Source of the DNA: Macrostomum lignano
Lineage: Eukaryota
NCBI GenBank assembly: GCA_002269645.1
Contig: NIVC01003792.1
Coordinates: 12,593 to 76,592 of the forward strand
Length of the DNA stretch: 64,000 nucleotides
Reading direction: 5' to 3'
The notes under the pieces: generated by a model
Databases searched by the model: none
What the model was told of the DNA's origin: nothing
What the model saw: only the letters and a program-made list of their open reading frames with translations
Shown: piece by piece, positions 17,331 through 61,848 of the stretch
Layout of the letters: every line of letters starts with the position of its first letter
How positions within the stretch are numbered: the first letter of the stretch is position 1
Program-made: the position numbers and the translations under genes

Positions 17331-20300
17331 TCAGGATTTGTGGTAGCGGGTGTACTTTCTGCTGTTCTTATGAACTGGCATCTCCTTGGACTTGAACGCA
17401 TTGAGCTCCTTCCTTATCTTCTCCTGCAATGGGTTTGGGGAGAATTTTCCCGGCTTAGCACAGCAGACTCCATAATCTTGAGGATTATTAATCTTCTGGC
17501 GTAATCTATTGACAGTTCAATGTCACCGTTTAATCCCAGATAGAAGGATAATCTTATTTGATACTAAAAATGATTAAAATTTGCACTGTAATTTAGGAAA
17601 TCATCTTCATACTCATATAAATGCGAATGCTAGCATCAAAGTTTTTAATAAGACGCGTTTTGACCGACGCGAACTATTTTTGAAAAACAATGACGAGCAT
17701 GAACTTATGCGTCGAACCAAACGGTTGAGCAAATATGTATGATGTGTGAAATTCAATATTCAAGCCAAGGATTTAATCTTAAGAATGTACAAATGGACAC
17801 TAGCTAATAAAGAAAGGGCAGGGACAAATTTAGAATAGAATGCAGTTTCAAGGCTTCAAGTACATCACTTCCGTTTCATACAATCGAGTTCCATATTGTT
17901 TATTCTTGCACATGTAGATGCTCAATCGTTAGGTCTAAGTAATTGAAGGGGAACACTTTACCGCAGGTAATCTTCAGTTTCTCACCTTGTCCACCTCCGA
18001 GAGGCAGGTCCAAGGCTTGTCAGTCACCCTGTCGTAGTCCTCAGTGCGGGTGACCTCGACGTAGTCGCTGAACTTGATGATCTGCCGGTCGCGCAGCTCC
18101 TCGACAGTCGGCCGGTAGCTCAGCTTCCTGGCTAGCAGGCGGATCTGCTGTCGCCGCTCGGATTCCAGCTGCTGGCTGCCGGTGGAGTGCAGGATGTTGC
18201 GCTCCAGCAGCTGCTCGCTGGTTGGCCTCAGGCTGAGCCGCCGCTCCAGCACAGCGCCGATTCTGTCCCGCTCCGACAGCGGCAGCTGCGAGCGAAGCCG
18301 CTGCAGGCCGGCCCGGCGCTCCTGACGGCGGTTTTCCAGGAAACGCGAGAACGGATCGCGACGTTTGAGAGAATCGAAGTTCTGCCGCTGCTGCTGCTGG
18401 CCCTGATGGGGCTGCTGCTTTGAAGCAAGCTGACCGCTACTGCTGCACTTTTTAATGATGCCCTTGGCTGGCTGGCGACCAAAGTCGGGCTCCTTTAAAG
18501 GGACCTGCTCATAGCCTTCAGGCACCGGCTCCTCTGATTCGGCAGGTTCGCAGGCTTCAACAGCGGTGACAGCCGTTGAGAACTCGGTTTGCCGCTGCTG
18601 GCCCTCGGGGATGAACTGAGACAGCGTCGCGAGCTCTCTCGTGTCCTTGCTTGGTTCGCATTCCACCGCGAGTCTAGAGGTGCAATTTTCTGTGGCTGTG
18701 AAGGCCAAGTCCGCACTGCTGACAGTCTGGACTATTGTTGCCGGGAGAGCCGCGGCAACTGTTCCATTCTGTGCGGCTAATGAGATGGGTTAGATAGATT
18801 AGCAATCCATTCATTAATGATAGCTAATGTAGACCTATATACGAGCAATATTAAGAAAAATAAAGATCGCAGCAGCTTCCGCAATGTTGATAATTGCAGC
18901 GAAACAGTCAGGCACGCAAGAACTGGTCGGATGCTTCCATCTCAAAAGTGACTCTGAAAACCGCTGAAGTAGTGAAAGAGCCCCAGGGAAAAGTTAGCCA
19001 AACGCCTTAAGCCAGACTTCAGCCCTGTGCACGCATGAAATGTTGCCACTTCGTCAAGTGCTAATAGTTCCCGAGGCCCCTGCGGCCCCTCCAATCAATA
19101 TTGACCGGCCGTTAGTCCGTCCATTGGCAAAGCGAAAGCACTGCAGCTCATGAATTATTGATGAGCGGAGGGCAAGAATCAACTGCTAAACTGGGGACGG
19201 CTCTTGAGAAAGCAGTCTTGCCCGAACTGTTTCTTTGTGGAGTTGAGCGTTCTAGAAATTCATCTTTCTTGCTTTATTGACTTGGTTTCAAACTTAGAAA
19301 GTACTCGCCCTCTGGGGGGAATACTGTACAAAAAATACACAAAAGCATTTAAATTCCTCTCAACTGAAAGCCCTCCCTGTTAATACGAGTACAATACCGC
19401 ACCCAGTCCCTTCTGCTAAAATTTCATTTAATGAAGTTTCATCTCAAGCCTTGGAGTCTTGGAGGTTACAAGTCGAATTTAAAGTCGGATCTACCGCGGG
19501 ATGAAATAGATAATTTTTTACGAAGGGTACATGAAAAAAGAAATATTTGCTTATTAGGGAATTATCATTAGGGTTTGTGTGCACCCTGGCGCACTGCACT
19601 TTAAGCGACATTGTCACACAACCGGCAAGAGGCACAACTGCCCATTCCGCCGACTCCCCTGAGCAGGTACACGAGCGCGTGGATACGTACACAGGCACAC
19701 ACGCACACTGGAGTGTACAGCGGCCCTAACTTTATTTATCGTTAGGCATGTACATTTCACTGTGCCTTGGGCGTTGACTCTCAAGAGCGTTAATTGCACG
19801 AGCAGAGCCAAGCCGAGATTCCAATTTAGCCCCAAATTAATGTGACTGTACTTGGGACCGAGCCTGGACCGCTGGGACATCAGAGCGCCGCGCCAGACCA
19901 CTGGGCGACGGCCTCCCTAATGACCTTAGTAATTTTTTGAACGAATTAAAATATGAATCACACAAAAATGATAATAATTTTCGTTCAACTAAGAAAGTGC
20001 GACTGCTGTAAATCGGAGCATTCCAATAAAACTATTCGTCCCATCACCGATGCGCTCCCTGCGTACTCAAGTAGAAGGATGCTGAACTCTCAAACTGTTG
20101 TATCTTAATTCACCAGAACGTGGAAAGCTACCTGGGACGATTTGGAAGTCTAAAAGGTAAGATACTTGTTAGTCACTTGCTAAGAAGGTTGACCTTTCCT
20201 ACCGCTATTAATTCAAGAACAACTTTAGTCAGCCATTGTGGTGAAAAAGTCCTTTTCCTAGTGAACTTCTCAGGACTTGAGAGTGCTTCTATTGAGTAGT

Positions 20301-28167: not shown

Positions 28168-28746
28168 TCACAGGACCTCGCAGTGAAAAGCTGGTTTTAT
28201 TGGCTTTTTTGGAACCAACACAGCACGAATAGCCTCGTCAAACACGCTCTTCAGCCCTTTCTGAGTCAGGGCTGAACACTCAAGGTACTTCGCAGCGTTA
28301 ATCTCCTTGGCCATTGTCATACCCTGCAGGTGGGTGATGGGGGCCAGCTTCTTTGCTTTTAGCTCTTTAATTGTCTCCTTGTCGTCGCGCAGGTCCATTT
28401 TTGTGCCAACCAGCACGATTGGAGCGTTTGGACAGTGATGGCTCACCTCCGGGTACCACTTGGATCGAACGTTCTCAAAGCTTGTCGGACTGACGAGGGA
28501 AAAGCAGATGATAAACACGTCAGTCTCGGGGTAACTGAGCGGTCGGAGTCGGTCGTAGTCCTCCTGGCCGGCTGTGTCCCACAGGCCCAGGTTAATAGGC
28601 CGGTCATTGGCCACCACGACGGCTGAGTAGTGATCGAACACTGTCGGCACATAGGTGCTGGGAAAGGCGTTCTCAACGTAAGAGATGAGCAGACAGGTCT
28701 TGCCAACTGTTCCGTCGCCAACAAAGACGCACTTTACCGACTGCAT
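28168..28746 (-). CDS. rac: Rac-like Rho GTPase (192 aa, intronless), CAAX = CEVL
   Basis: [52 protein letters not shown]. The true ATG is at 28746; the ORF-track extension to 28824 is a tandem-repeat artefact. Confidence 0.95.
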
Positions 28747-28752
28747 TCTTAG

Positions 28753-28792
28753 GATACTGTGAGATACTGTGAGATACTGTGAGATACTGTGA
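28753..28792 (-). repeat. Four perfect 10-bp units just 5' of the Rac ATG (forward GATACTGTGA; TATCTCACAG-periodic on the minus strand)
   Basis: GATACTGTGA x4 directly visible. Confidence 0.95.
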
Positions 28793-29816
28793 GAATGAAA
28801 TTTCCGAAATTCTGTCTCTCGCAAGCCGTGTCAGCGTCACGCGTTTTATAATATTTGTGGCTTTCGAAATCGCTTATTTTTAGACTATGCCTCACTCAAA
28901 CGATAGAGAAATAACACAGTAAGCTCGTACCTTCTCTGCCCAGTCGCCCTCTCCTCTTCATGCCCTCTCTTATTTTTCATGCTTGCTACAAGCTATTAAT
29001 AGTCAGCTACTGCGTAATTAGTAAGCATGCAAATTCTTTCCATAGCATCCTTGGATATGGAAGTGACAGAAACATTGCCACCTACACGAATCTCAACTGC
29101 TGCACCGGAAAGCAAATAATTAGTTGAATTTGGGGTTCAACTTTTTCTTAGATTCAATGTATCGATTCAATCTAGCAAATTGAAACTGAAAAACAACTTT
29201 ACGGTTTCTTAATGGTACGAATTGATTAGAAACGCTGTGACACCCTGCCATGCATATTAAAATGTTTAGAAATACAGAAAAATCTGTCTATTCTCAAGCA
29301 CATTCATTCGCTAAGGAGGGCAAGGCAAGCAGCATGCATCAACCTTCCCTCTCGAAAGGGTGAAGCTGCATAAACTCTCCACTTGGCCAGCGCTCGCAAC
29401 CTTCTACTCATTTCAGAGCCCGATGCGATGCCCAGAGCAAAAGAGACGATGCCTTTGATGCCATCATCGCCTTCTCTTCTCTGCTGGTATGACTGACTAG
29501 CACGCAGCCTGAAAAAAATTGCAGTGTGCACAGAGCGTGCTTTTGTGCGCGCGCCCCACCCCAACGCCCCCTTGCCTAGCAGTTATCCCGACCCGCAAGT
29601 TTTGTCTGTGCAGACTAGCAATAGTCAGATCTATTTTTGCCAAGTCTACACAGAAACTGGAACTCAGCTATCTATCTACTTGTTTCTTTCATTCCTTTTT
29701 GCATATCGAAGCCTATCTCAGACATAAAAGAAAATTCTTACCAGGCGCAGAAATAGAATTTAGTTAGAAGATACGCTGTAAGCCAGCTCCTCTCTGTTTT
29801 AGACCTTCTGAGCGCG

Positions 29817-30404
29817 ATGCAGGCCATCAAGTGTGTTGTGGTTGGAGATGGAGCTGTTGGAAAAACCTGCCTCCTCATCTCCTACACGACCAACGCCTTT
29901 CCTAACGAGTACATCCCGACCGTGTTCGATAACTACTCGGCGAATATCATGGTGGACAGCAAGCCCATCAACCTGGGCCTGTGGGACACGGCTGGCCAGG
30001 AGGACTATGACCGGCTGAGGCCGCTGAGCTACCCGCAAACTGACGTGTTTCTGGTCTGCTTCTCCCTCATCAGCCCGGCCAGCTATGAGAACGTGCGGGC
30101 CAAGTGGTACCCGGAGGTGAGACACCACTGTCCCAGCGCTCCGGTCGTGCTGGTCGGCACCAAACTGGACCTGCGCGACGATCCAGAAACGATTGAAAAG
30201 CTAAAGGAAAAGAACCAGGCCCCCATCACCCACCTGCAAGGCATGTCGATGGCTAAGGAGATCGGTGCGGAGAAGTACCTGGAATGCTCAGCCCTGACTC
30301 AGAAGGGACTGAAGAACGTGTTCGACGAGTCAATTCGAGCCGTGCTGCGGCCTCCCAAGCCCACACAGAGAGGACGAATTGGTGGGAAATGCAAAATTTT
30401 GTAG
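29817..30404 (+). CDS. rac: Rac1-like GTPase (195 aa, intronless), CAAX = CKIL
   Basis: [60 protein letters not shown]. Confidence 0.97.
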
Positions 30405-32549: not shown

Positions 32550-33131
32550 ATGCAAACGATCAAGTGCGTTGTGGTTGGCGATGGAGCAGTCGGAAAAACA
32601 TGTCTGCTCATCTCCTATACTACCAACGCGTTTCCTAACGAGTACATCCCGACCGTGTTCGACAATTACTCCGCCAATGTGATGGTGGACGGCAAGCCCA
32701 TCAACCTGGGCCTGTGGGACACGGCTGGCCAGGAGGACTATGACCGGCTGAGGCCGCTGAGCTACCCTCAAACCAACGTGTTCCTTGTCTGCTTCTCCCT
32801 CATCAGCCCAACTAGTTACGAAAATGTTCGATCGAAGTGGTACCCGGAGGTAAGTCACCACTGTCCCAACACTCCGATCGTGCTGGTCGGCACCAAACTG
32901 GACCTGCGAGACGATCCAGAAACTGTTGAAAAGTTGAAGGCCAGGTATCTGGCCCCCATCACGCACCTGCAAGGAATGACAATGGCAAAGGAAATCAACG
33001 CAGTGAAGTACCTGGAGTGCTCAGCTCTGACTCAGAAGGGGCTGAAGACTGTGTTCGATGAAGCTATACAAGCTGTAATGTGCCCGAAGCCGAAGAGCAG
33101 CAAGAAGGGACTCAGCTGCAAACTGCTTTAG
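32550..33131 (+). CDS. rac: Rac1-like GTPase (193 aa, intronless), CAAX = CKLL
   Basis: [42 protein letters not shown]. Confidence 0.97.
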
Positions 33132-36361: not shown

Positions 36362-37133
36362 TCAAGGTTGGCTCAATGCTCTCGAAGGATCCAAGTAGCA
36401 CTTCTTCGTGAGTCTGGACACTGTTTCCGAGACTGTGCTGAACCGTCGGTGCCCATGCTGTACCGGAGTGTTCTTCAAACGGTAGGCAACACTGGTCATC
36501 ATGCTTAGGATATCGTTGCACTGGTACTCATCTGAAATAACTTTACTAAGAGCCTGGACGTAAAGCGAGCCCTTGCTCTCATCCCGAAAAGTGACGTTTC
36601 CTTCCGTATTAGCAAAGCACATTAGAGTATCGGCGTCACAAGCGCGAGCGGGCACGCTCGATGACTGCGGCGCATCAACTGCTAAGCCTCTGCTCGAACA
36701 CGAATTTTCCTCGATATGCTGGAAAGAAGAATAATTTGGGCTTGTCTCGCAGAGCCTCGCACTCGTTGGCCCGAATCGTGTCGTGATTGAAGAGATTTCC
36801 ACTGGCACGCCTTCTCGATCATAGATCCAGCCGTTACTTCCGTGACCCATCACAAATAAAATAAAGCAGCCAATCTTACTCAGCTCATCCCTCCGGGTGA
36901 GCTCGTCGTTGATAAACTCGAAGATTTCATGGCTCTTTGGGTTAAATTTCTTCACGTCAAAATTAAGTCTGGTAAACAAAGTTGACAAAATTTCAACATC
37001 TATCTCGGATCCGACTCGATCGGAAAATTCAGACTCGCAGTTGTACTTGTGCACATTGATCAAGAGAAAGCGGCGCGTTGGCTGAGTCACTGGGTAGGCT
37101 TCATCCCCTGCTCCAGGATCGAGCATGTGTAAT
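36362..37133 (-). CDS. Caspase-like terminal exon, catalytically dead, with paired compensating frameshifts across the active-site loop
   Basis: p20 features (FLLINVHKY, GSEIDVEIL, FILFVMGHG) and p10 features (DADTLMCFANTEG, GSLYVQAL, VSETVSRLTKKCYL). No QACRG in frame; the alternative frame over ~36771-36690 reads ANECEALRDKPKLFFFPAYRGK. Preceded by a phase-2 acceptor TTTTTAG at 37134. Confidence 0.85.
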
Positions 37134-37499: not shown

Positions 37500-43030
<5,531 letters not shown>

Positions 43031-45242: not shown

Positions 45243-48138
45243 TCAGCCTGAGGGCACAAGCTTTCGCAAGCGCCGCTGACTTGAATCGGGCGGACGTCCA
45301 TCAGCCTGTGACTCGCGTCGCACCAATCCTTTAAAGAAGGTATTTGCTAGACGCCTAGATACGTGGGTCAATTGCCCCGACTGCAGCTGGACATCCATGA
45401 ACGCATCGAAAACAATTAAAAAGACAGACCGGAAGTAGTTGACGCAACGAGGTGTTGCAGCGTTGAAGTAAGCGTAGCATAGGCAAGCAAATACCACCAG
45501 CCACTCAGGAGGGTGACACAGCTTCCCTCGTGAAAGAAGCGAAGTGAATTCACTGCTACAGGCTGGTTCGTAAACCGTAGCAGCCTGACAGTCGAGCTTT
45601 TCCTTAAAGGCCACGTAGCCACTGATAAAATATAGCGCTGCATTCTCCGCGTCAGAAATGTTGTCGGACAGTTGTGGGAGATTGTCAACAATTTTCCAGT
45701 CTCCCTGCGAAATTTCAGCAGAGCAACAGGCCAACGGTTGATGGTCGTCACAGACTAACTCCAATTTACTGTAAAGTTGCATTCGGCGTAGCCGCGCACT
45801 GGCCAAAATTTGATCAACGGATATATAATAACACCCGCCGTGGCCTTGCCGATAAATAGAAAACTCCCCCTCAAGCCGGTCAGTCTGCAGCTCACCTAAA
45901 AATTTTTGAAGTTAGTGCCTGGGTATGCAGGTCATATTTATTGAGTGTCAATTTATTATGGCAATAACAATACCAAAAAATTCCCGTAATGTTACGGGAA
46001 ACAGGGAGTAGTGAATAATACTACGTACCGAGCAACACGTACGAAAACCCTACTTTCATCAGCAAATGTCTAGACAAATCAGCCAGGCCGTTCGCAGTCT
46101 GATGGATAGCCTTGCGTGTCTCAGTAGTCAGCGATCGAGGGCGGCTAGCACCCCTACCACCTGGCATGCGATCAACGACAGCTGCAAAACTGAGCAGCTC
46201 CTGAATTGCACTTGAGTTGGTGCTGCTAATTGGGGCTCGCCGAATGTCATTCAGACGAATGTGGGACTCTGGTGACTTTACGTTTACAACTGTCCAAAAG
46301 TTGAGAACGCGCTCGACGAAGTCGGCAGTCTCAGAATAGCCATTCAGCTGTAATGCTGCAACTGTTTTCTCGTGGAATACATCAAGCACCAGCGAAACTT
46401 TCTGTCTCTCAAGAGGAGAGGGGCGGCACGCGACTGGATTAAGACGTGTCGTCCGTACAATATGATTTCGAGAAGCTTCCTCAAGCCTGGTGATTTCGTT
46501 CCACTTAGCCCGCTTGACTGGCTCTCCAATCACTGGCTGAAAGTCGATCTCACAAAAAGACTGCGTCAGCCAGTTGTTCCGGATGTTCTTCATCAAGTGT
46601 ACTGGGTCGTACAGCAGGAACAGCGGCTGATCGGGATCAGCTGGATTCTTCGCCAACCAGGGAACAGCAGAATCCCCTTGCAACAGTTGGAAGCAGTTGC
46701 GATTGGTGAAGTGGTTGTCACAAATTAGACTGACAACTGTGCCCCCTAGCTGATGTATTAGTTGGACGAGATGCACTACTTGGTCGTACAGGAAGGCTGG
46801 TTGCAAGCTGTAAATGGGTATCAGCCGTGCAACATAAGCGGGACCGCCCATGAACGACTTTACCATCAGCGCCAAAACAGTACGAGCAATTTGACGGGGA
46901 GCATCCTCTGAATACCCAATGGTATGACAGCCACTGAATCGTAGCGACGGCTTGACATACACTTCATCGAATAGAATGATGCAGTACCGCTGCAATGGGC
47001 TACAGTTTTCAAGATGTGACTGCACAATCGACTGGCAGTCACTGTCTGACCCAACACTGCCAAGACCACCAATGTGCCGCTTGAGTGTAGATGGGTGAGG
47101 CAAACAGGTGTACTCTCTCAAAGTTTTATAAGCTCCTCTCCCGGCAAAATAGAACCTGGCTGCAGTCATGATGTCCTCAGAAGTGTATCGGATTCCGTTG
47201 GGATTAAGCGAACTTAGTTTTAGCTGTCTGAGAAGAAACAACTGCTGAGGACTGTAGCTGGTTGAACCAGTAGTAGCTTGCAACGCCTGCAAATGGCTAT
47301 CCAATTCAGCAGACTGAGTAAACTCGGCATGCCTCACCCTATTCAAAACTGCCTCCAACTGGCTGAACCGCTCCATTCGGTGTTGAAAGCCAAGCAGATC
47401 AGAAATGCTGACAGGGGTATTGCGTCGGTGTGCTTCAGCTGCAAAGTTGCTTCTGATGGTAATAGACACCTCGACTGTTCGTTCAGTTACAATCATCAAG
47501 TTCACTCGATCTGACTTTTGCTGCACAAGCCAGTTGTCAGTAACAACACAGGCTAGTTTGGGAACCTGCTCAGTAAAAGTCTGCCATGAACTGATGCGGT
47601 CCTGAGCATTGAATTCTTCTAATTCATCTGGAATAGCAGCTCGCTCGCTCAGAAGCACACAACGTTGAGAAACCTCCCTGGATGATCCTAAATATAAATT
47701 ATGGTTAGTAACAATAGACCCACATCCAAAAGGATATTATTAATGAATAGCATAGCATAAGTCAGATGAATCAGATCTTACTTGGCACAGTTTGGCGTAC
47801 TGCACTGATAGGGACAGATGAAAAGATACTTGGAGGATCAACTGGTCGCAGAAAACGCTTTACTTTTATCATCCGAGCATTTTCAGGCCAGTGTTGGGCA
47901 CAAATCTTTTTTATTGTGGTCACCTATGAAATTTAAATGCACACTTGCTTGACCAAACTTAATAATAGTGCATAAGATAATATATATATTATAACAACAC
48001 ATGTACCTTAACTGAAGTGGGCAAAGCCATCATCCAGGCATCACAATCTGCTTTGTCCTTTGGAAAGCTATAAACAGCAACCTTTGGACCAGTCAAATAG
48101 TTGCCTTTGCAGTTGGGAATGCCGCACTTAAATGGCAT
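45243..48138 (-). mobile_element. THAP-domain P-element-superfamily transposase, 4 exons, apparently intact (~861 aa)
   Basis: Exons 48138-48007 (MPFKCGIPNC..YSFP..W), 47923-47782 (ICAQHW..RPVDPPSIF), 47687-46029 (ILFDEVY, LICDNH, YDPVHLMKNIRNNW) and 45895-45243 (QTDRLEGEFSIYRQGHGG). All junctions are GT-AG and in phase; total 2586 nt. TIRs not identified. Confidence 0.9.
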
Positions 48139-49358: not shown

Positions 49359-50127
49359 CTACTTTTCTGTGTTCGACTCAAACTCGGAAGCTAGTCCGGG
49401 GTCCAAGAAGCACTTCTTGGATAATCGTGTCAACGTCTCCGACACGACGAATAACCTGTTCCCATCTCTTAGTACTGGGTTTTTCTTGAGACGGTCGTTG
49501 GCAATAGTCAGCATGTCGAGCAGGTGCTCGGTCTTGTGCATCTCTTCAATCACATCGCACACTGTCTGCACGTATGGCGACCCTTCTGTAGGGTTTCTTA
49601 GAGAAGCCTGGCCGCTTGGAGTGGCGAAGCACAACACGAAATCGCTATCCCTCGGGCAGTAATATGCATTAGACACTTGCTGGTCCACCCATGCACCTGG
49701 AATGGTTTCGCAACCCTTTCCTCGGCATGCCTGAATGAAGAAGAGTTTCGGCTTGTTACACAGTCCGGTGCACTCGTTTCCTCGAAACCGTTTAGCGATG
49801 GCCTGGACCTCCCATGCTTCACCATCGATGCCGTAAATGGAGGATTCGTCACCATGAGCCATGATGAAGCATACGAAACAGCCATGGTTAGAAAGGTCCG
49901 GAGAGAGGGCTTTAAGACTTACGATTCGAACGAGTTCATTGCAAGTTAGATCTTCGTGAACCTCGACAATAAAATTTAAGCTGGTAAACAATCTCTTCAC
50001 TCTATCCACGTCTAATTCCGAGCCAATTCTTTCTTCAAATAGCGCGCGATTTCTATATTTTTTTATGTTGATGATCAGACAGAAGCCCTGAGGTGAGGTA
50101 ACTGGATAAATGGCCTCCTTGTTTCGT
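49359..50127 (-). CDS. Caspase catalytic domain exon (p20+p10), active-site residues intact
   Basis: IYPVTSPQGFCLIINIKKY, GSELDVDRV, CFIMAHG (His), KPKLFFIQACRG (Cys), DSDFVLCFAT, GSPYVQ, VSETLTRLSKKCFL. The frame is open upstream of the ORF-track GTG start to a phase-2 acceptor at 50128. Confidence 0.95.
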
Positions 50128-53100
50128 CTGGAATTGTTGAATTACGATTTTGTAGGTCGTAATGTAGCTTCGATATTATTTAAATGCAGTTATTTTAGTC
50201 AGTTCAAAGAGGGCCGTTGAGTACCCCTGCAAAATGAAGGCCTCAAAATAAAGAATCCTGAAGGTAAACAGCAATACCTATTCCTCTAACCCCTGAGCAC
50301 GCGAACGCACACGGATACGTACAAAGGCACACACTCACACAATGTAAGCAACCCTGACTTTCTTATCGTCAAACATGTACACACTCTGTACCTCGGAGAT
50401 TGTCAAGAATAATTTGATAAGCTTGATTTTCTCGCAAAAGCCCAAAGTCACTCGTAATTTGGCTTGGCACGAGAGTCAGACACCTTCCTGCTCACCTACT
50501 TTCACTCAATTCAGACACCATGCTTTGCTAACTGCCAAAATCCGAACATAAAAATTTTTTTTAGTCTAGCGCAAGAGTAAAAGAGTGCATGCACCCAGAG
50601 CTCACCTGTTCAGATCGTTTAACTTTTGTGTCGCAGCTTGGAACGAAACTCTAGGTTCCTGTGAAGGATAAACTTCAGTTTGTTCAGCGGGTCCAGTAGG
50701 TTCCTGTGAAGGATAAACTTCAGTTTGTTCAGCGGGTCCAGTAGGTTCCTGTGAAGGATAAACTTCAGTTTGTTCAGCGGGTCCAGTAGGTTCCTGTGAA
50801 GGATAAACTTCAGTTTGTTCAGCGGGTCCAGTAGGTTCCTGTGAAGGATAAACTTCAGCTTGTTCAGCGGGTCCAGTAGGTTCCTGTGAAGGATAAACTT
50901 CAGTTTGTTCAGCGGGTCCAGTAGGTTCCTGTGAAGGATAAACTTCTGTTTGTTCGATGACTCCTGACTGTGCCTCAGTACTGGAGTTTAATCGACGAAT
51001 ACCTCGCGGCTTTGGAATCGGATGCGGAGGCACAACCGGCGGCTGTGCTTTATGGGGCTTAAATAAACCCTCAGATTGGCCAGAACAAACGTCATATTCC
51101 ACGTCTCTATGGTCGTTGGAGTCGAAACTTTGAGCACTGTTTAAATGTGAGATTCGGTGATCATCTATTGCATGTATACTTTTTAATAGGATATTTCAAG
51201 TTAACTTACGAGGCAAATTCGTTACACTCGTCGAAATCACGGTGAGGCTCATCCAGCTGATCGTGAGGCTCTGAGGCTTCAGTTTTGCTGCTTTCCTTTT
51301 CTTGTATTGAGCCGACTTCCAGAATTTTTCTGTAAAAACAAGACGCAAAATCTAATGGTGGACAAAAGAACCCCCATCATCGTTGAAACTTTACCATAAT
51401 ACGAGCGTAGGAACAACAAAACGATAGTTTCAGCTGTTGCTGTTGCAAAGTTTTTTTGAGATAGATGCTTAAAAAATCTTACTTTTGTTTTTCGAAAGCC
51501 GCTCTTACGGCCGCCTTGAAAAGGCTATCTAGCCCCGATCTTCTCAGAGCCGAGCACTCAATGTACAATTCAGCGCCAATATCTTTGGCCAGAGCTGTCG
51601 CCTGCAAGCTGCTGATGGGAGCAAGCCGCTTTCTGTGCAGTTTCTCCATTTCAACTCTATCGTCGAGCGCATCCATCTTGGTCCCAACCAAAATTATTGG
51701 AGTGTTCGAGCAGTGAAGAGCTATCTCTGGAAGCCATCGGGTGCGCACGCTGTCAAAGGTAGCGGGACTGGCAATGGAGAAGCAGATGAGGACGACGTCT
51801 GTCCCTTCATAGTTTCCCGGCCGCATTCGGTCATAGTCTCTCGAGCCACTGTTATCCCACAGGCCAACGCGAATCGTATATCCATCTACCTGAACCTCTT
51901 TTGATAAGCAGTCGTCGGTCTCAGTAGGAACATACTCAACTGGGCAGAGTCCTTCAGCATAGGCCACGAGCAGACAGGTTTTGCCGACCTTCTCGTCACC
52001 AACGACATTGATTTTTAGTTTCAACGCAGGGACAACGGCAGCTATGTTTTTGTTCCGTTCCTCTTGCTCTGCTTTCATTTGAACCTGTCTCTTTTTTAAC
52101 GCTCTAAAACGATTCGATGTTTGTTGATTTTTAGATGAAAACTAGGATAAAATTATAACGCTTTTATCATTGATTTAGAAGTTTCATGCAAAAAATATGT
52201 ACCTGTCAGGTACTGGAGGCAGAAGCTGTGGTGGTGGCAGAGGTATGTCCTGGGCTTGTGGTAGAGGCCTTCAAAGGTGTAGAAATGTTTAAGTTATATA
52301 GTTGCGTTCAATTATCAGTTAACTGAAGTTGATTAATCGTGTAAAGCACTACAATTAGGTTGAATATTCTTCGATGAAGGCTCAATAATAGGCTTTATAA
52401 TTCAGAATTTACAATAAATTAGCAATAATCTATATAAGGTCGTTGGACTAATAGCTTAGCTCGTACAGAGAAATTGCAACAAAAATAAGCCAATTGTCAA
52501 AGCTTGGTCTTATCCCAGAGGTTGTCAAACTCCGGCCCTCAAAGCCTCTCTTTCCGCCCCTCCAGTCCTTTGAAACTTCACAATCGCAATCCCATCCGCT
52601 CTCTTCTCAGCTCTCTTTTCATTTTCTCTTCTCCTTTCTCATTTCCCCTCTCCCCTCTATCCTCTCTCCCATCCTCTCCTTTCTTTACTTCCTTCTCTTA
52701 TCTCCCCTCTCCACTCTTTACTCATTCTCCTCTCCGGTCTCGTAAGGGATCTTTGGTCTCACAGTCCTTATTGTTTCGCGGGCCAGTTTTTGGTTTGCAA
52801 ATCTAAACTGTGACAGTTGAAATTGTGACTAAACTGTTTATTAAACTTGTGCACTACACACGCTCGTATTAACTATCTAAGGTGCTCTGTGGAGGGAATT
52901 TCAAGGAAGAGCATTGCAAATATATCCAGAAAGACACACTAAGAGAATCTTTCATGCCTACCTCTGACCAAGGTCGTCAGTCTTGAACGGTCTTTGTTGA
53001 ATTGTGTCTTGTTTGTTAGATTCCGATGGCTCATCATCAATAAAGTCGTACACATATTCTTCCTCGGTAGCCTCCATGTTGTAGCAGCTTGCATAAGTCC

Positions 53101-56100
53101 TGCAAATAATCGTTTTAGTGCTTTTATCACGTCGGTTTGATGGTTTGAGTAAAGACCCCAGATACTAAAACTGGGGTCAACTAGTGGGTGACTTCAAAGC
53201 ACAGGGAGATACTGGGCTAACGCACCTGTTTGCTGACTGGCGGCGCGCCTGTCTCCTGTCCTTCTCTCACCCTCCGCAGCCCCTGCTTGGACTCAACCGC
53301 AGGGATATCAGGGCGGTGACAATCCCTCTCGGGCCGTGACTGTTTTGCCAGACATCGCTACCTCCTGGGAAAAATCCGCAGTGAGAGGTATGCCCGTTCT
53401 GCCTCTACGTAAGTCATGTAATTAGTCAAGCTAGCTCGTATTTGTACATTTTAAGAATTTCGGGGTCGCATTCGCCAGTTTGAAATTTCACATCCTGGAA
53501 AAGTCTTATCTGTTACTTTTTTGAAGAGTGAAACTTCACAAGCTCAAATTTTCATATCGCGAAGTTATTTTAAATTTTGGATTGCGGGAGTGACTAGCAC
53601 GGGTTTTCAAAGTTGTGAAATTTCTTGTGAAGCGCCCCTATTATGTTTTATTGCGAGTAGTCAAATGTAGCTCGTAAAATAAAATTTCTTTTTCTCACGG
53701 ATTTGTTGCCTGAACATCCGCCTTCATGTAGCCATGCCGGTTGTATAAATCTATAGACGGACACGTATAGATGTCTGGATCGGCGCCTCCAGTTGCTCCG
53801 GCCAAAGGATAATCAAAATCTCTAGAAATATTTCATTTGAAGAAAACGAATTTTATGTTTAATAACAGGAAGAGTAAAAAACAATTTCTGTTAAGGATCC
53901 AGCCAGACATTTTTGCTACAGTGAAAATTCACAAGGATGGCTAGATTTTTCTCGCACATGGTCAAAGAAGATTCATGTCACTAGCCTTCGAAATCGTCCG
54001 AGATTTCAATGACATTCAATAATAATGATATTCAACAATGATATTCAAAGATATTCAATGATTTTGCCAGAAGGTCCGGATTTTTTCCCTCAGAATGCAT
54101 TCAGTGCACCCCCTAGGCAGAAATTACGAGCAAGCGCTGCAACTCAGTGCGGCCTTGCCAAGCCTTCAAATTTCGTTATTGTCTCTGACTTTAACGGCCT
54201 TCTTCTAGGCGAAACTTCCGGACATTCAGCAGGCATTGGGTGCGAGACTACGTAGGCACCCTATTTCGACATTTTTCAAGCACCGTAACTGATGGGGGAT
54301 CCTCAACTAGGGAAGACCGACTTTTTTTAGAAATAACGAAGAACGCTCATATTTGCAGGAGGGCTGTGGGCACCCTGACGCATCGCTTTGTGTGACGTGG
54401 GAATGTGATGTGCGAAATCGTCCCACAACCCGGCGCTGAGGCAATTCTGATTCCGCTGACTCCTGAACTCATTCTGTACGCAAATTTGTAAAGCGGCCCT
54501 TTGACTTTCTAATTGCCAGGCATGTGCAACTCTCCGTGCCTTGGAGGGGGGGTTGCCCGCAATTTGACTTTCTAATTGCCAAGCATGTGCAACTCTCCGT
54601 GCCTTGGAGGGGGGGGTTGCCCGCAATTTGACTTTCTAATTGCCAGGCATGTGCAACTCTCCGTGCCTTGGAGGGGGGGGTTGCCCGCTCTCCGTGCCTT
54701 GGAGGGGGGGTTGCCCGCAATTTGACTTTCTAATTGCCAGTGCATGTGCAACTCTCCGTGCCTTGGAGGGGGGGGGTTGCCCGCAATTTGACTTTCTAAT
54801 TGCCAGGCATGTGTACTCTCTGTGCTATAGGGGGGGGGGGTTGCCCGCAATTTGACTTTCTAATTGTCAGGCATGTGCACTCTCTGTGCTATAGGGTGGG
54901 GGGGGGGTTGCCCACAAGGGTGTGAAAAGCACGACGAGAATTTACGAGTGCAAGCGCCAAGTTGATGTGGGTGTTCATTTAATCAAATGAGGTACCAGAG
55001 GGAGGTCGCATCGCGAGAGTCAGACGCGTTTTCCGGTGACTCTGTTCCGCCTTTTTTGAACTCCACTTTGGTAAATTTGCTTTTAAACTCTTTTAATCAA
55101 TGGAAAACTACTACTGGCTATTGATAGGTATAAGTCTGTAAATAAATACCGCAGTTGCGGCGCCTCTCATATGAGTGATGGAAAGTAAACGGGAGCTTAA
55201 ATTTTTTTCAGATTTTTTTAAGCAGAGCAGAACAGCATTGTTTTGTCAGCGCACCCAACTGGAGCTTTTGAGTACATGTAGTATGCTAGTAGTATACTGA
55301 GCAAACTTAAACAAGTTGTCGAGATTGAACACCAAAAAATTTTAAGCTTACGGTTCGATTCCTTGATCACGTGTCGCCGCTCGAATCGGATCGGGTTGTA
55401 GATACTCACATTCATCAGTTTTTTGGGCACTATTGAGGAAATATGATTATTTTTTCACGGTTAATTTTTTCTAAGAAAATGATTTTAATTTACTGTTTTG
55501 TTTGCGACAGATAAAGAGAGTATTGACTGTTCGCGCTTTTGCGTTGCTCTTCCTATCATTTTCGTGAAGGTCATCAGTGCAATTTACTGATGAACTTGAG
55601 ACACCAATGACTAAAGGATGCTACAATGGCAAATTGTGAAATCTGCACAGAGAATATTGTCACGCAGTATCAGATAAGATATGGTCGATACTCTCTGAAT
55701 CAAAGACGCAATCAAATGATTCGAGACCAAGAACATCTCGTACACGTAGCCATTCTAATATAAAAGATACCTGTACTCGTTCGAACTCTTAGTTCTTCTC
55801 CAAAAGATGGCTTTTGACGGGAGAATACTTAGTGCCCTGCTGCAATAAAGTTTAAAGGAAACGAATATTAGGAGAGCGTAGTAAAATATTCAGCGTAAGG
55901 CATATCAGACGAAAAGTAATAAAAAGTAAAATGAACACGTACCTTTTGTTTGTTTTTGACAAAGTCTGATTGTACTTCGTGAAAATAATCTCTTCAAAAA
56001 CTTCCCGGACACTCTCAGGATTCAGAGCGGAGCACTCTTTGTAAGTCTCAGCGTTGATAATTTTTCGCAGATCACGGCCTTCGAACTGACTAATCGATGT

Positions 56101-56475
56101 CGAACTGTCTCGCAGGTCCCGCTTGGTTCCAACCAGAATAAAGGACGCCTTGTGGAAGAGCTTTCTGCACCTTTTAAACCATTTTCTTCTCACGTTTTCA
56201 TAGCTCGCTCGGCAATCGATGGCAAAGCAGAGAAGCACAACATTCGCCTTTGGGTAACTCGGCATGTCGACAAAGCATTCGTCCTTACTGGGCGAGTCCC
56301 ACAGTGTGATCTGAAATGTGTGTCCCTCTAAAGTGCTCTCCATGCTGTGTTTCTTAAAGCAGTCAGTGGGGATGTGCATGCGCTGGAATTCTATGCCTAA
56401 TTGGCAGTCAATCAGGCAGGACTTGCCAACCGCTTCGTCGCCGATGGCGAGGCAATTGATCTTGTTTGAACTCAT
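49359..56475 (-). CDS. Predicted tandem Rho-like GTPase - Rho-like GTPase - caspase fusion protein (~925 aa, 7 exons)
   Basis: Exons 56475-55943, 53099-52962, 52268-52203, 52103-51483, 51329-51210, 51136-50606 and 50127-49359. All six introns are GT-AG and phase 2. The exons are open in one frame and sum to 2778 nt. The link across the 2.8-kb intron (55942-53100) is the least certain. Confidence 0.8.
50653..50955 (-). repeat. Coding tandem repeat, 45 bp / 15 aa (EQTEVYPSQEPTGPA), ~6.7 copies, in exon 51136-50606
   Basis: Near-perfect copies visible; unit length is a multiple of 3 and the frame is open. The exon has a TTTAAACAG acceptor and a GTGAGC donor. Confidence 0.95.
51483..52103 (-). 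CDS. Atypical Rho/Rac domain exon (GTPase 1 of the fusion)
   Basis: GDEKVGKT (G12E), YVPTETDD, WDNSGSR (Q61S), TKMD, ECSA; no CAAX. It ends CAA AA|GTAAG, so the ORF-track stop lies inside a donor site. Confidence 0.9.
53183..53406 (+). mobile_element. Degenerate internal fragment of the same LINE family as 37.5-43 kb, lying in an intron
   Basis: Aligns by eye to ~42460-42685 (CTTCAAAGCACAGGGAGA, CTGCTTGGACTCAACCGCAGGGA, GGAAAAATCCGCAGTGAG). Confidence 0.85.
54500..54917. repeat. Tandem repeat, ~63-bp unit (TTTGACTTTCTAATTGCCAGGCATGTGCAACTCTCCGTGCCTTGGAG(G)nTTGCCCGCAA), ~6-7 copies
   Basis: Period of 63 (54500 vs 54563); one internally deleted unit; G-runs lengthen toward the right. Confidence 0.93.
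55943..56475 (-). CDS. Highly divergent Rho-like domain exon (GTPase 2)
   Basis: GDEAVGKS, HIPTDCF, WDSPSKD (G60S, Q61K), TKRD, ECSA. Phase-2 donor AG|GTACGT at 55942; strong acceptor TTTTTTAG at 56527, 51 nt upstream of the ATG. Confidence 0.85.
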
Positions 56476-58165
56476 GCTGCTGCTCTGTCAGCTGCTAGCG
56501 CCAGGCTGTCTATCAACGCTGTATACCTAAAAAACAACTGGGCAAAGTCCCGTCTCATTTTCAAGATTGCATTCAATTTAAGATGGTAATTCTTTGCTCT
56601 GCAGTCTAGTGGATAAAATGCCCTCGGAAACTAACGTTCGTTATTGTTCATGAAGCGTCCATCTTTCAGTTTAAACTGTCTTTATTGCAAGCATAAAACA
56701 CTGGCCCTAATGCTGGGGAGGGGGAGGGAAGAGGGGTATTCATTTGAGCACAATATCATTGATATCAGAAACGCATTGTTCTTCAGGCCAGCTCCATTGA
56801 ATCTGACTCAAGCACCACATTTTGTAGCACATTTTGAGCTGGAGCGAATAAACAAAAAAAAATTCTTTGAAAAAGGGTTTCGAAAAAAATCTGTTTGCAT
56901 ATTGCAGAGTAGAAGCTCGAGCCTGGCTTACGCTGAAGACGTGACGGTGATGCTGCTGAGTGCAACTCTCCTCTCCAATACGACCAAGCAACCTTGGAGC
57001 CAAGAGTAGAGAGAGTAGACAACAGAGAGCTATGGCTCGTATTTGCCTTACTCCGTCTACTTCGTATATTCCGCCAGCACCCAGCCTCTCATGCAAGCAC
57101 TCTGATAACGCTGTAAGCGCCAACCTTGTACTCAAAGAGTGTCTTTCATAAGATACCTCTTTTTGCGACCTTCTCACGCACTTTTAAACGCCGTTTCGGT
57201 GCCATTTTTAATCTGACAATTAATGGATGGCGACCCCGACTGCAAAGCATGATTGACTGTCGTTTGTGAGACGCTTTATTGAAGATGCAGACTTGCTTTA
57301 CTTGTCGACTTTTACATGCATTCGACATTAAATTTAACATACAGTGACATACGTCGTATGCTTAGTACCCTCGTATGCCATGTAATCTTCACTAAAATTC
57401 AGGCCTGGTTTTCAATAAAGCTCATTTCTTTAGGTCTAAAGAAACACGTGCGGCAGCTATCAGAGAGTAGCGGGTAACAAAAAATATTTTATTTAGTCTC
57501 CTTTAATTTCTGCTTAAAGGAGATATTTTGCTCAAAAAGTCACTTAAAGTAGGAAGGCGCAGAAAATATGGATAAATCTAAAAATGGGGCGCTGCATTTG
57601 AATTTGATGAGACCTCAACACACTGCATGATAACAAAAGAAGCAAAGAATCTGTGTGCTACTGATAGTTTTAAGGTGAAAATATGGCAGAAAAATAGCAA
57701 GCCTATTTACAACTGAATATCAAGGGAACTATGTGAATGTGAAAAAATGAGTACGTTAAGAATCAACGGTAATCTAAGAACGGGAGCTGCTCAACAACAC
57801 ATGTGCAATTACAGTGCGCAGTTACTACGACCTAATCCATTAATCTACGCTCGTATCTATCAAGTTACGGGTCCTGCGTAAGCGTCTGCACATATGGTGT
57901 AATGTCATCAAAGACGGACCAAAGCAACTGATGATATTGGCTTACAAGTTATGTTAAAGTTCTTATGAGTCTGGAAATCGAAAGCTACGAGAGTACGAAC
58001 GAAAAACAGCAGGTACTGTGAATTCAGGATCATTTTAATATGGAGCCGAATATGCGTTTAAAATGGTACTGCTAATAGAGGTTGTCATGCACGATTTGTA
58101 TTGAATACAGATTTAGCCCATATTGTCATGAGTGCGTTGGTTTCTTGTATTCAATTTCGATCGAT

Positions 58166-60555
58166 CTACCCGTGATGATTTTTGCTTTCTGTTTTTCTCA
58201 CGGAAGCCAATACCGCCTGTCTAAAGATGTCTTCCACAGCTGTTCTACACAGAGCGGAGCACTCTAGATACACTTCAGCACCGATCTCTTTAGCCAACTG
58301 CTCGCCCTGAGTCACGCTGATTGGAACGAGATTCCTTTCCTCCAGCTTGTCGATGGTCTCTGGGTCATCGCGCAGATCGGAATTCGTTCCGACCAGGATA
58401 AATGGCTTTTCAGGACAATGACGGCTCACTTCCGGGTACCACTTGGCCCGTACATTCTCGAAACTAGCAGAATTGATGAGGGAGAAGCAGATGATAAACA
58501 CATCTGATTGGCGATACCGCAGAGGCCTTAAGCGGTCAAAGGACTCCGCACAGCTCACGTCCCACAAGCGGAGACACAGTTGGCTTCCAGCCAGTGAACC
58601 CTCCACGGCAAAGCAGTCGTCGGTCTCTGTGGGAACATACTCCTGAGGACACTGGTCCTCTGCGAATGCGGTCAGCAGACTGGTCTTGCCAACCGCTTCA
58701 TCTCCAACTATGACGACTTTTAATGTTATTGTGTCACTCTTCGTCTTTGATTCGGCGGTTCGAAACACGACAATAGTTTCCGGATAATCAACTCGAGAAC
58801 TAGGCTCTCTGAGGTTTTCCGAGACTGGCTCTCGCTGAGCACTGGCGGACTCCGTGTCCGAGCTTTCGTCGTCACTTTCTGTTTCGGATGTCGGCTGCTC
58901 GTCTTCGCTGAGCTCGGGACTCACGGCTTCTTGTGTACTGCAAGACATTGTTAAGAGGGAAGATTACGCATTCCCGTAGACAGATAACTGTGTCTGCAAT
59001 CCTTCATAGCTTGAGTTCCAGTTAGAAAAAGCTTACCTCGAAGCAGGCTGTTGGGGCTGATCCAAAACTTCAGCGGATGAAGTGTCCGCTGGCTCGCAAG
59101 TTTCACTCGAAGCTTTGGTTTTCTTATCGTGCGACTTCTGTTGTCTAAAAAATATGAGCATATGGGATACATTTTCCACTGCTCTGGTTTTGGCAAGGAA
59201 TGCTATTATTCTGAATAATTTCAAATTTAAGAAACAGTCGTACGATGCGATATTGTACGAGTATGTTTTCCCAGGGCGTAAACCGCGGAAAAAGGCTTTA
59301 ATCGATGATGGAGATCTGCAAGTTTTTTTAAATAAGCTCGTGCAAAAAACTCGTATTAGTGGCTAATTAAAAAGAATTCTAACAGAATTTTAAAACAAAA
59401 ATTACTCCAGAAGAGGAGCTAGAGTATTTACTTAATGCTCGGCTCATCAGGTGAAGTTTCGGTCTCGGAATCTTTGGTTCCACCATCGGAAAGAACACTT
59501 TGCCTGCAAGGGTTCATTGGAAATCTTGTTGCAAAATATTTTAATGAATATATTTCAGGAATAAAGTGTGCTCCAGCAAATTACTTGATAGACGTTTCAG
59601 AGTTCCTTCTCGACGACGATAGCGAATGAAGGAACGAAACGACTTTCTTGGAATCTCTGAAATTATTGCAAGTTGTTAAGTAGTGTGTGGCGATCTTGTT
59701 TTTGAAAGCGTTCTCGCTCACGCATTTTGATAGCTCGTGCATTTTAAATCTGTGAAAAAACTCGAGAAGTACCCAAGCCAGAATCTAAAGAGCTTTGATT
59801 ATTTTTCAAAGCTCTTTGCTGATAACTTTCACTTCTGTTGGCCCTTTATAAAAGATTCTTGATACACATGTACAACATTTTTAACCTACAAGTGAACTCA
59901 AACAGTGGCTGAAACTATCTTTACGCACCCGTGGTGTTCATTTTTCTTCTTTTTGCCATTGCGAGCGTCAGAAGAGTTAAGAACTAAGCGAGCGGCCTCT
60001 TCGAACACTTCTTTTAATCCTTGCTGAGTAATTGAGGAGCATTCCATGTACTTTGCCGCATTGATTTCCTTGACGAATTCGTTGGCTTGCTCAGCTGTAA
60101 GGTTTTTCTCAGCATCTTCTTCCTTGGTCTCGCTTATTTTCAAACCTGTTCGCATGTCAAGCTTTGTTCCAACCAAAATAATGCGTGCTGAGGGGCAGTG
60201 GTGGCTCAACTCCGGGTACCACTTTGTACGCACATTGCCAAGCACAAGTTCGGCTGACTTGGTCAAGTCAAGGCAGATGATAAACACGTCTGTCTGCGGA
60301 TAGGCGACTGGTCTGAGAGTGTCGTAGCCTTCACTGCCTCCCGTGTCTGTCAGCGCCAGTTCGATAGACTCCGATTCCATGGGCAGCCGAGCTGAGTACG
60401 TTTTGTAAATTGTTGGAATAAACGTGTCTGGCATTGAGCCATTTACGTAGGTCTCAATCATGCAGGTCTTGCCAGCGGTAGAGTCGCCAACAATAACACA
60501 TTTGATCATTCTCATGATTGCTGCTATCAAACTTCCGACAAGTTTTTTTGCAGAG
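58166..60555 (-). CDS. Multi-exon unit encoding two further atypical Rho domains (GTPase 4 - Ser/Glu-rich linker - GTPase 3), ~536 aa if it starts at ATG 60515 and ends at 58166
   Basis: Exons 60555-59929 (GDSTAGKT, FIPT, DTGGSE, TKLD), 59656-59585, 59503-59432, 59144-59037 and 58937-58170 (GDEAVGKT, YVPTETDD, WDVSCAE, TNSD). All junctions are GT-AG, phase 2 and in frame. The 3' end is unresolved (stop at 58166, or donor GTAGAT). Confidence 0.8.
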
Positions 60556-61275: not shown

Positions 61276-61848
61276 TCAGCCAGGGGTTGGATTTACATGT
61301 AGAAAGCATTTCTTTGATGACTGCAACGCCGTCTGCGAGACTGCAAAAACTTTGCTGCCTCCTGCCGCAGTCCGGGTTTGAGGCGCTTATTTACATGAGT
61401 CCGCATGTCCGATATGCGCTCTTCCATGCGCCTTCTCGAGGTCGCACATGGCCTGAATAAATTGATCTCATCTCTGAAAGCTATGTAGTCCTCAGTGTTG
61501 GTGTAGCACATCAAGAATTCGCTGTCCATCGAGTAGTTCGGATCGACCAAGTACGTTCTCTAACTTAGTAGCGGCCCAGGATGGATTGAATTTCTAGAGG
61601 CTCGCCGTCACTACCATGGATCCGATCGTGCATTCTGTGAGCCATTATGAAGCAGAAAAAGCATCCGTGATCTTTAATCTTAGAGATGAGTGCGAAGCAG
61701 TTTTTACGTAGTTCAGCAATCTAGTTGCACTTCAAATTCTCGTGCACACGGGCTCTCATGTCTGTGAGCCGTCTCTATTCATTCTGATTGAATTCACAGA
61801 GATTAATAACCAAAGCTCTAGGCCCTGGGGGATGTCACCTGATGGTAC
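61276..61848 (-). pseudogene. Caspase pseudogene exon paralogous to the 49.4-50.1 kb exon
   Basis: Manual translation gives YHQVTSP, ALVIN, VHENLKCN*, DHGCFFCFIMAHRMHDRIHGSDGEPLEIQSI, DSEFLMCYTNTED, DMRTHVNKRLK and VSQTALQSSKKCFL. It has in-frame stops, frameshifts, His-Gly changed to His-Arg, and the QACRG region is missing. Phase-2 acceptor ACAACAG at 61849. Confidence 0.85.

Follow-up and report, generated by a model that had tools for sequence, protein, structure and literature searches.

A 64-kb stretch of the genome of the flatworm Macrostomum lignano carries four Rho-type G domains, all with replacements at the positions on which GTP hydrolysis depends, near a caspase. It raises the question whether these domains are Rac copies in decay or working parts of a protein, and what they might do beside a caspase. 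We call the whole stretch (64,000 nucleotides of contig NIVC01003792.1) the window, and all coordinates are positions in it. The domains lie on the minus strand between 60515 and 51483, each in a single exon, and are numbered GTPase 4, 3, 2 and 1 in descending coordinates. All four match the Pfam Ras family (PF00071), with E-values from 7e-26 to 4e-37. We found that they are shared between two adjacent, transcribed, lineage-specific genes: gene A, with the architecture Rho-Rho, and gene B, with the architecture Rho-Rho-linker-caspase.

Structure of the two genes

As gene models we used the transcript-based GenBank proteins of the contig. PAA49773.1 and PAA49772.1 were each reproduced residue for residue, as a unique solution, from window exons joined by GT-AG introns. 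Because the GenBank annotation of the M. lignano assembly was built from RNA-seq data (StringTie and a de novo transcriptome, supported by evidence from trans-splicing and poly(A) sites, followed by TransDecoder; PMC5730564), the two models reflect transcripts and not ab initio prediction. Gene A (PAA49773.1, BOX15_Mlig030969g2; 560 amino acids, 6 exons) encodes GTPase 4 and GTPase 3 without a caspase, and its protein has two Ras matches in Pfam. Gene B (PAA49772.1, BOX15_Mlig021837g1; 1015 amino acids, 10 exons) encodes GTPase 2, GTPase 1, a linker and a caspase domain, and its protein has two Ras matches plus Peptidase_C14. The introns of both genes are all in phase 2, so every internal exon among the 16 is symmetric and duplicated exons can join without breaking the frame. 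The exons are as follows.

59929..60515, minus strand: gene A exon 1, GTPase 4, with a Rac-like MRMIKC start and an HHG end at a phase-2 donor
59656..59585, 59503..59432, 59315..59244, 59144..59037, minus strand: gene A exons 2-5, acidic, Ser-rich linkers of 72, 72, 72 and 108 nt, phase 2-2
58166..58937, minus strand: gene A exon 6, acidic linker and GTPase 3, its stop TAG overlapping a weak donor-like GG/GTAGAT (the slash marks the splice point)
55943..56475, minus strand: gene B exon 1, GTPase 2, with an in-frame TGA 12 nt before the ATG
55839..55771, 55429..55352, 53821..53699, 53099..52962, 52268..52203, minus strand: gene B exons 2-6, linkers, all phase 2-2
51483..52103, minus strand: gene B exon 7, GTPase 1, symmetric, 621 nt
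51329..51210, minus strand: gene B exon 8, acidic linker, 120 nt
51136..50606, minus strand: gene B exon 9, Pro-rich linker, 531 nt, with ~7 copies of the 15-amino-acid unit EQTEVYPSQEPTGPA
49359..50127, minus strand: gene B exon 10, caspase p20/p10 (Peptidase_C14), 769 nt

The original prediction, made from the DNA letters alone, had treated the four domains together. In the transcript-based annotation they are divided two and two between neighbours, and we dropped a caspase gene with all four Rho domains as our main model once both GenBank proteins had been rebuilt exactly. A physical connection to a caspase holds for GTPases 2 and 1 but not for GTPases 4 and 3, which belong to a separate, caspase-less protein. 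Downstream of the strongest acceptor 5' of GTPase 2 (ttgttttttag) the frame meets stop codons, among them the TGA 12 nt before the ATG, which fits a separate start for gene B. The linker repeat of exon 9 derives from a 45-bp tandem repeat (50652-50955, 6.8 copies, 98% matches). Intron 3 of gene B contains an array of 64-bp tandem repeats (54500-54917).

A second genomic copy of the locus, on contig NIVC01001849.1, is 99.1-99.6% identical to the window over ~15 kb. Its annotation differs, with one protein of 244 amino acids (GTPase 4 only) and one of 757 amino acids (GTPase 1 and the caspase). Gene B is shorter on this copy because a 1-nt insertion in exon 3 (A6 to A7, window position 55425) breaks the frame between GTPase 2 and GTPase 1; it could be a genuine lesion or a homopolymer error of long-read (PacBio) sequencing. 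Differences between the two copies cluster at 52-54 kb and 60-61 kb, so that finding none in the G exons carries no information, and we dropped the comparison of copies as a source of evidence for selection. Exon 5 of gene B (53099..52962) is unusually divergent between them, with 10 differences in ~140 nt. Searches of full texts and of the supplements of three M. lignano papers returned none of the transcript identifiers Mlig021837, Mlig030969 and Mlig000293.

Residues and Rac origin of the four domains

The four domains were aligned to human Rac1 and to the three Racs encoded in the same window; Rac1 numbering is used throughout.

GTPase 4 (60515..59929, minus strand): GDSTAGKT and DTGGS, equivalent to G12S, A59G and Q61S, with F28M
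GTPase 3 (58937..58166, minus strand): GDEAVGKT, DVSCA and TNSD, equivalent to G12E, T58V, A59S, G60C, Q61A and K116N, with F28C
GTPase 2 (56475..55943, minus strand): GDEAVGKS and DSPSK, equivalent to G12E, T58S, A59P, G60S and Q61K
GTPase 1 (52103..51483, minus strand): GDEKVGKT and DNSGS, equivalent to G12E, T58N, A59S and Q61S, with F28C

Gly12 and Gln61 are replaced in every domain, Gly60 in GTPases 3 and 2, Lys116 in GTPase 3, and Phe28 in three of the four (by Met, Cys and Cys in GTPases 4, 3 and 1). Ten positions (G10, G15, K16, P34, T35, D57, T115, D118, C157 and S158) are invariant across the seven flatworm sequences and Rac1, and the motifs GK[ST] and CS[AS] are kept in all four domains. 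CAAX boxes are absent from all four domains and from both proteins; each G exon finishes either at a splice donor or, after HHG, at a stop codon. The original prediction had listed the G12/Q61-type changes for each GTPase, and its list proved exact; it was also right that GK[ST], Thr35 and CS[AS] are kept without a CAAX box, and that the substitutions follow the pattern of the GTPase-deficient proteins Rnd and RhoH (PMC13236570).

Beyond that list, the domains differ from Rac in the Phe28 replacements and in a rewritten switch I: GTPases 1 and 3 have PTETDDC in common where Rac has PTVFDNY, and among the domains the TVFDNY of Rac becomes TETDDC, TIYKTY or TDCFKK. Tyr32 is kept in GTPases 1 and 3. 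The Rho insert helix (Rac1 residues ~123-135) is present in GTPases 4, 3 and 1 and deleted in GTPase 2, the most divergent domain. An AlphaFold2 model of GTPase 2 nevertheless has the Rho GTPase fold, with a predicted local distance difference test score (pLDDT) of 85 and a predicted template modelling score (pTM) of 0.85; its confidence drops only at switch I, switch II and the deleted insert. Rac1, RhoA and RhoG are among its top structural matches and superpose on it with template modelling scores of 0.82-0.86.

The window contains three canonical Rac genes.

28168-28824, minus strand: Rac gene 1, intronless, CAAX box CEVL
29817-30404, plus strand: Rac gene 2, intronless, CAAX box CKIL
32550-33131, plus strand: Rac gene 3, intronless, CAAX box CKLL

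Their products are 74-83% identical to human Rac1, and among the three genes the synonymous divergence (dS) is 0.7-1.8 and its ratio to the non-synonymous divergence (dN/dS) 0.09-0.16. Compared with Rac1 and the local Racs, GTPases 4, 3 and 1 have 47-52% identity and GTPase 2 has 36-37%, while identity of the four domains to Rnd3 or RhoH is 28-42%. The best solved-structure matches of GTPase 1 in the PDB are Rac1, Rac3 and Rac2 (E ~2e-59). We also ran the phylogeny against the Racs, Rnd3 and RhoH that had been suggested with the original prediction, as a small neighbour-joining tree. GTPases 1 and 3 formed its only supported clade (97% of 200 bootstraps), and no kinship with Rnd or RhoH appeared. 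Since identities and tree both place the domains nearer to Rac than to Rnd3 or RhoH, we rejected orthology to Rnd/RhoH; as judged from these alignments the four domains are Rac-derived, and their likeness to Rnd and RhoH is convergent. It is mainly in the P-loop and the switches that GTPases 1 and 3 have derived states in common (G12E, F28C, V36E, F37T, an extra Cys and A59S); both have thus retained a remodelled switch face.

Exon structure also bears on the origin of the domains. Each G domain is one exon, like the intronless neighbouring Racs, and all four G exons reach a phase-2 GT at a homologous place, where the hypervariable/CAAX tail of Rac would begin. This donor is used in GTPases 4, 2 and 1; in GTPase 3 a donor-like site is overlapped by the stop codon. 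Reading through the donor of GTPase 4 (59913-59928, minus strand) gives a polybasic GKKKK and then Cys-Val-Lys-Ile. This CVKI may descend from the CAAX box of the ancestral Rac; the donor GT would then have arisen one base ahead of the Cys codon. The three canonical intronless Racs are the likely source of the four Rho exons. In the simplest history, whole Rac genes would have been duplicated in tandem, the copies would have lost the end carrying the CAAX box and stop codon, and the resulting exons would have been captured upstream of a caspase, illustrating a route to fusion in which copies of intronless genes turn into symmetric exons.

Comparison of any G domain with any Rac, or with another G domain, gives a saturated dS (at least 1.8, or undefined) and a dN of 0.41-0.80. 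As a neutral test, we applied random substitutions to one local Rac coding sequence up to the observed nucleotide divergence of 42-48%. Only 0.07-0.17% of the trials per exon stayed free of stop codons, whereas the real exons are open in all four cases (P ~0.001 each). Of 14 residues that contact the nucleotide or Mg, 10-12 are kept, against an overall identity of 38-53%. What real decay looks like at this locus can be seen directly upstream of gene A, where a caspase relic provides the contrast case and suggests an earlier tandem copy of the caspase unit, since dead.

61300..61750, minus strand: caspase relic, 45% identical over 60 amino acids, with in-frame stops, its pieces lying in three reading frames, and AHR in place of AHG

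Two explanations of the locus compete with a pair of working genes. One is that the Rho exons are Rac pseudogenes drifting neutrally, and that the fused models are chimeric transcript assemblies; decaying, unexpressed duplicates were named in the original prediction as the outcome that would refute it. The region is indeed rich in transposons, the genome was recently duplicated, gene B exon 3 is frameshifted in one copy, and a genuinely dead caspase adjoins gene A. However, saturated dS, exons that are open at a divergence where neutral copies would have acquired stops, and gene models derived from RNA-seq together led us to reject the decaying-duplicate scenario, and the Rho exons are not decaying copies. 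The sixteen exons have canonical GT-AG junctions in one consistent phase, residues of the nucleotide pocket are preferentially kept, and the adjoining relic has the stops and frameshifts that the Rho exons do not; we consider decay or artefact extremely improbable. The other explanation is that both genes yield one caspase with four Rho domains, at least as an alternative isoform, as in the WormBase/UniProt model A0A1I8GCE2 (1207 amino acids), an ab initio model that joins them. It draws on the uniform phase 2 of the exons of both genes, on an internal GTPase 3 donor (TCC/GTGAGA) that, with an acceptor just before the ATG of GTPase 2, would keep the frame, and on the finding that transcriptional units of M. 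lignano can hold several genes (PMC5730564). Against this, the transcript-based annotation of NIVC01003792.1 has two genes, the donor-like site at the GTPase 3 stop (GTAGAT) is weak, and the only strong acceptor 5' of GTPase 2 runs into in-frame stops. Moreover, A0A1I8GCE2 frameshifts the repeat exon and truncates the caspase, which marks it as a computational merge, and we think a four-Rho caspase unlikely.

The caspase, its relatives and the rest of the window

The caspase domain of gene B (PF00656, E 1e-44) looks catalytically competent: in an alignment to caspase-7, the His of AHG, the Cys of QACRG and the Arg residues of RIGSELD and SLRNP are intact. Its nearest matches are other Macrostomum caspases, at 41-44% identity; the closest solved structures are those of caspase-7 (the best match), -8 and -3. 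Pfam detected no death-fold prodomain (CARD or DED) in gene B, where only the two Ras matches lie upstream of the caspase. The nearest caspases in our searches bear other N-termini, either ANK repeats or ANK repeats with a protein kinase domain, so prodomain swapping seems to recur in this caspase clade, and flatworm caspases seem to have recruited unusual N-terminal modules repeatedly. Proteins of this ANK-caspase or ANK-kinase-caspase kind are P0127, P0128, P0161 (M. lignano), P0297, P0324, P0399 (50%-clustered representatives), and ANK-caspases also occur in tapeworms (P0144, P0155).

We searched 5.8 billion proteins at 90% clustering with a Rho+caspase query, and 1.84 billion representatives at 50% clustering with the 757-amino-acid protein. 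At 90% clustering, and among the best 150 matches of the 1.84 billion representatives, the combination of Rho and caspase was found only in the M. lignano proteins themselves; long matches in several stretches resolved to tandem caspases, to DED- or ANK-caspases, or to tandem Rho proteins. The literature searched held no relevant description of Rho-caspase fusions or of flatworm caspase prodomains. Both genes are already deposited in GenBank and UniProt as hypothetical proteins, and their architecture is apparently undescribed. The pair is real, expressed and lineage-restricted, and combines two known kinds of protein, GTPase-deficient atypical Rho proteins and prodomain-bearing caspases.

RhoBTB, Miro and the tandem Rho proteins P0295 (a transmembrane segment and three Rho domains), P0211 (four Rho domains), P0212 and P0214 likewise carry several Rho-type G domains per chain. 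P0295 has G12T/S/A and Q61K/Q/L and an N-terminal membrane anchor. Unlike gene B, these four tandem Rho proteins have no caspase; they are 27-44% identical to the flatworm domains and are probably independent inventions. Arrays of two to four tandem Rho-like domains, many with substitutions at positions 12 and 61, occur in other eukaryotic assemblies, and P0211 (ENA ERZ25067590) lies in a cluster of further Ras-domain genes.

A caspase paralogue also lies in the window, with transposon sequence between it and gene B. Its QACRG is replaced, so that the catalytic Cys is lost while the His is kept, and by its sequence it looks like a pseudo-caspase. The remaining features of the window are a retrotransposon of the type without long terminal repeats (non-LTR), a fragment resembling it, a transposase open reading frame (ORF), two further ORFs or genes, and long arrays that are open in several frames and are probably non-coding tandem repeats.

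36362..37126, minus strand: caspase paralogue, intact ORF of 254 amino acids, 36% identical to the gene B caspase, Pfam E 5e-25
37700-42820, plus strand: non-LTR-type retrotransposon, RVT_1 split over two ORFs, then RNase H
46021-47658, minus strand: ORF of 545 amino acids with a TNP-like transposase RNase H domain
53184-53339, plus strand: retrotransposon fragment in gene B intron 4, resembling the C-terminal ORF of the element at 37700-42820
24690-27521, minus strand: tubulin-tyrosine-ligase-like gene (PF03133), single exon, 943 amino acids, with long low-complexity inserts
17974-18708, minus strand: ORF with RPEL repeats (actin-binding motif)
8446-8946 and 12598-13567: long minisatellite-like arrays, with GEMGTWGDGYLGRWVL repeats and GYWDMGY repeats

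Predicted nucleotide state and proposed role of the Rho modules

In small GTPases, a residue other than Gly at position 12 and most replacements of Gln61 abolish both intrinsic hydrolysis and hydrolysis stimulated by GTPase-activating proteins (GAPs). Replacement of Phe28 (as in F28L) or of the Lys of NKxD (as in Ras K117N) makes nucleotide exchange faster and favours spontaneous GTP loading, and replacement of Gly60 (as in Ras G60A) blocks the GTP-driven change in switch II. Without a CAAX box there is no membrane anchoring and no control by guanine nucleotide dissociation inhibitors. With Glu or Ser at position 12 and Ser, Ala or Lys at position 61, the flatworm modules should have lost intrinsic as well as GAP-stimulated hydrolysis, and since Phe28 is lost in three of them and Lys116 in one, their nucleotide exchange should be faster. 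We infer that none of the four can cycle and that none is prenylated. GTPases 4 and 1, with DxxG intact in the Rnd-like sequences DTGGS and DNSGS, are probably permanently loaded with GTP. GTPases 3 and 2, in which Gly60 is replaced, are probably frozen, non-switching pseudoGTPases, and may also hold nucleotide poorly (GTPase 3 having lost the NKxD Lys as well). The original prediction of constitutively GTP-bound or pseudo-GTPase modules is therefore favoured in part: the retention of most pocket residues speaks for it, but a simple lock in the GTP state does not suit GTPases 3 and 2, given their losses at Gly60 and Lys116.

Human counterparts with such changes are Rnd1-3 (RhoE) and RhoH, which are constitutively active and GTPase-deficient through substitutions of the position-12 type, and for which, with non-Gly at 12 and non-Gln at 61 as in the flatworm domains, constitutive GTP loading and escape from GAP control are expected (PMC13236570). 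Rnd3 has GDS..GKT and DTSGS, to be compared with GDSTAGKT and DTGGS in GTPase 4 and DNSGS in GTPase 1. Unlike Rnd and RhoH, to which they are not orthologous, the flatworm domains have no CAAX box or farnesylation and are embedded in multi-domain proteins, and two of them also lack the Gly60 of DxxG. The Rac1/2/3 proteins are their best sequence matches and share the Rho insert with three of the four, and bona fide Racs lie 19-32 kb away; unlike those Racs, the domains have changed or lost the catalytic residues Gly12 and Gln61, the VFDNY effector loop, the tail with its polybasic stretch and CAAX box and, in three of four, Phe28.

If the modules are not switches, they could serve as constitutive, nucleotide-shaped protein-binding surfaces with a remodelled switch face. 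The di-Rho unit would then be the prodomain of a caspase-3/7-like protease, in the role that CARD and DED have in initiator caspases. It would bring the zymogen to a partner or platform, or else hold it in check, a restraint that cleavage in the long Asp-rich linkers would relieve. Gene A, as a prodomain-only paralogue, could compete for the partner of gene B in the manner of the CARD-only proteins beside CASP1. We favour this reading, in which Rho modules that neither cycle nor carry a prenyl group serve as the prodomain of a caspase and the upstream gene A is its prodomain-only paralogue, but as a hypothesis that we hold at even odds.

This arrangement has partial precedents. The initiator caspases (caspase-2, -8 and -9) and the flatworm ANK-caspases likewise have a long prodomain of interaction modules and a flexible linker before the caspase. 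In gene B, by contrast, the prodomain consists of two Rho-like G domains with no death fold, and the catalytic domain is nearest to the effector caspases-7 and -3. The CARD-only proteins COP, INCA and ICEBERG lie next to CASP1, much as gene A adjoins gene B; the sister pair of GTPases 3 and 1 has one member in each of the two genes. The fold, however, is a different one, and a regulatory role for gene A is putative.

Several points weigh against the prodomain hypothesis. GTP binding, loss of hydrolysis, caspase activity and the existence of a binding partner are all predicted from sequence. To our knowledge, Rho domains do not serve as oligomerisation modules. The frameshift in the second copy means that the link between GTPase 2 and GTPase 1 rests on one of two near-identical genomic copies. 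An orthologue with both domains was not found in any other species, at 90% clustering or among the best 150 matches at 50% clustering. We set aside the dN/dS between paralogues (0.13-0.37) as a measure of selection, because with saturated dS it is a rough upper-level indication only.

Two other roles make different use of the same features. As integrated decoys, a possibility raised in the original prediction, the modules would mimic host Rho, and modification by a toxin at Thr35 or Tyr32 would release or activate the fused caspase. Pyrin guarding RhoA, plant NLR decoys and the NLRP1/CARD8 tripwires are conceptually alike in joining an element that resembles a pathogen target to a cell-death protease. 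In favour of this, GTPases 2 and 1 share a polypeptide with a caspase that is apparently active, all four modules retain Thr35 and two retain Tyr32, and related caspases carry sensor-like ANK or kinase N-termini. The locus also evolves fast and contains duplicates, a pseudo-caspase and a dead relic, as is often the case at immune loci. Thr35 is, however, needed for Mg and GTP binding in every Ras-superfamily protein, which makes its retention non-specific, and a decoy is expected to mimic its target, whereas these domains are 36-52% identical to Racs with a rewritten switch I. The residues attacked by deamidases, ADP-ribosyltransferases and YopT-type proteases (Gln61, the Asn39 equivalent and the prenylated CAAX Cys) are absent, two of the four modules sit in a caspase-less protein, and our data name no toxin or pathogen of M. 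lignano. Pyrin itself senses RhoA activity indirectly and contains no Rho domain, and the flatworm modules are strongly diverged from real Racs. The decoy idea is thus somewhat disfavoured, and we regard it as improbable; equally doubtful is its fuller form, a single-polypeptide counterpart of pyrin-RhoA guarding in which the Rho modules would bait bacterial or parasite effectors and gene A would act as a sponge or co-sensor. Alternatively, the modules could be payload: the active caspase would cut the Asp-rich linkers and free always-on Rho modules, independent of GAPs and of guanine nucleotide exchange factors, to cause cytoskeletal collapse and rounding of the dying cell. Long, acidic linkers rich in Asp (DQLD, FDSND, VEYD and others), modules whose sequences suggest a permanent, unregulated on-state, the Rnd-like switch II of GTPase 1 (DxSGS), and the analogies of caspase-cleaved ROCK1 and of cell rounding by Rnd proteins are in keeping with this. 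Yet an effector loop that is neither Rac- nor Rho-like makes the known cytoskeletal effectors unlikely partners, unprenylated modules would not reach membranes, and the caspase-less gene A fits poorly, so release of a payload also seems to us an improbable role.

Knock-down studies in M. lignano have been published. Transgenesis is established in this species as well (PMC5730564), and together these make the prodomain, payload and decoy models directly testable. If the decoy model were true, gene B would be a one-protein analogue of pyrin guarding RhoA or of the integrated decoys of plant NLRs. If the prodomain hypothesis is true, the flatworm genes would represent natural always-on or pseudo-GTPases of the Rnd/RhoH type that arose independently from Rac, and a new wiring of a small-GTPase surface to cell death in a protease family that normally uses death-fold prodomains such as CARD and DED.

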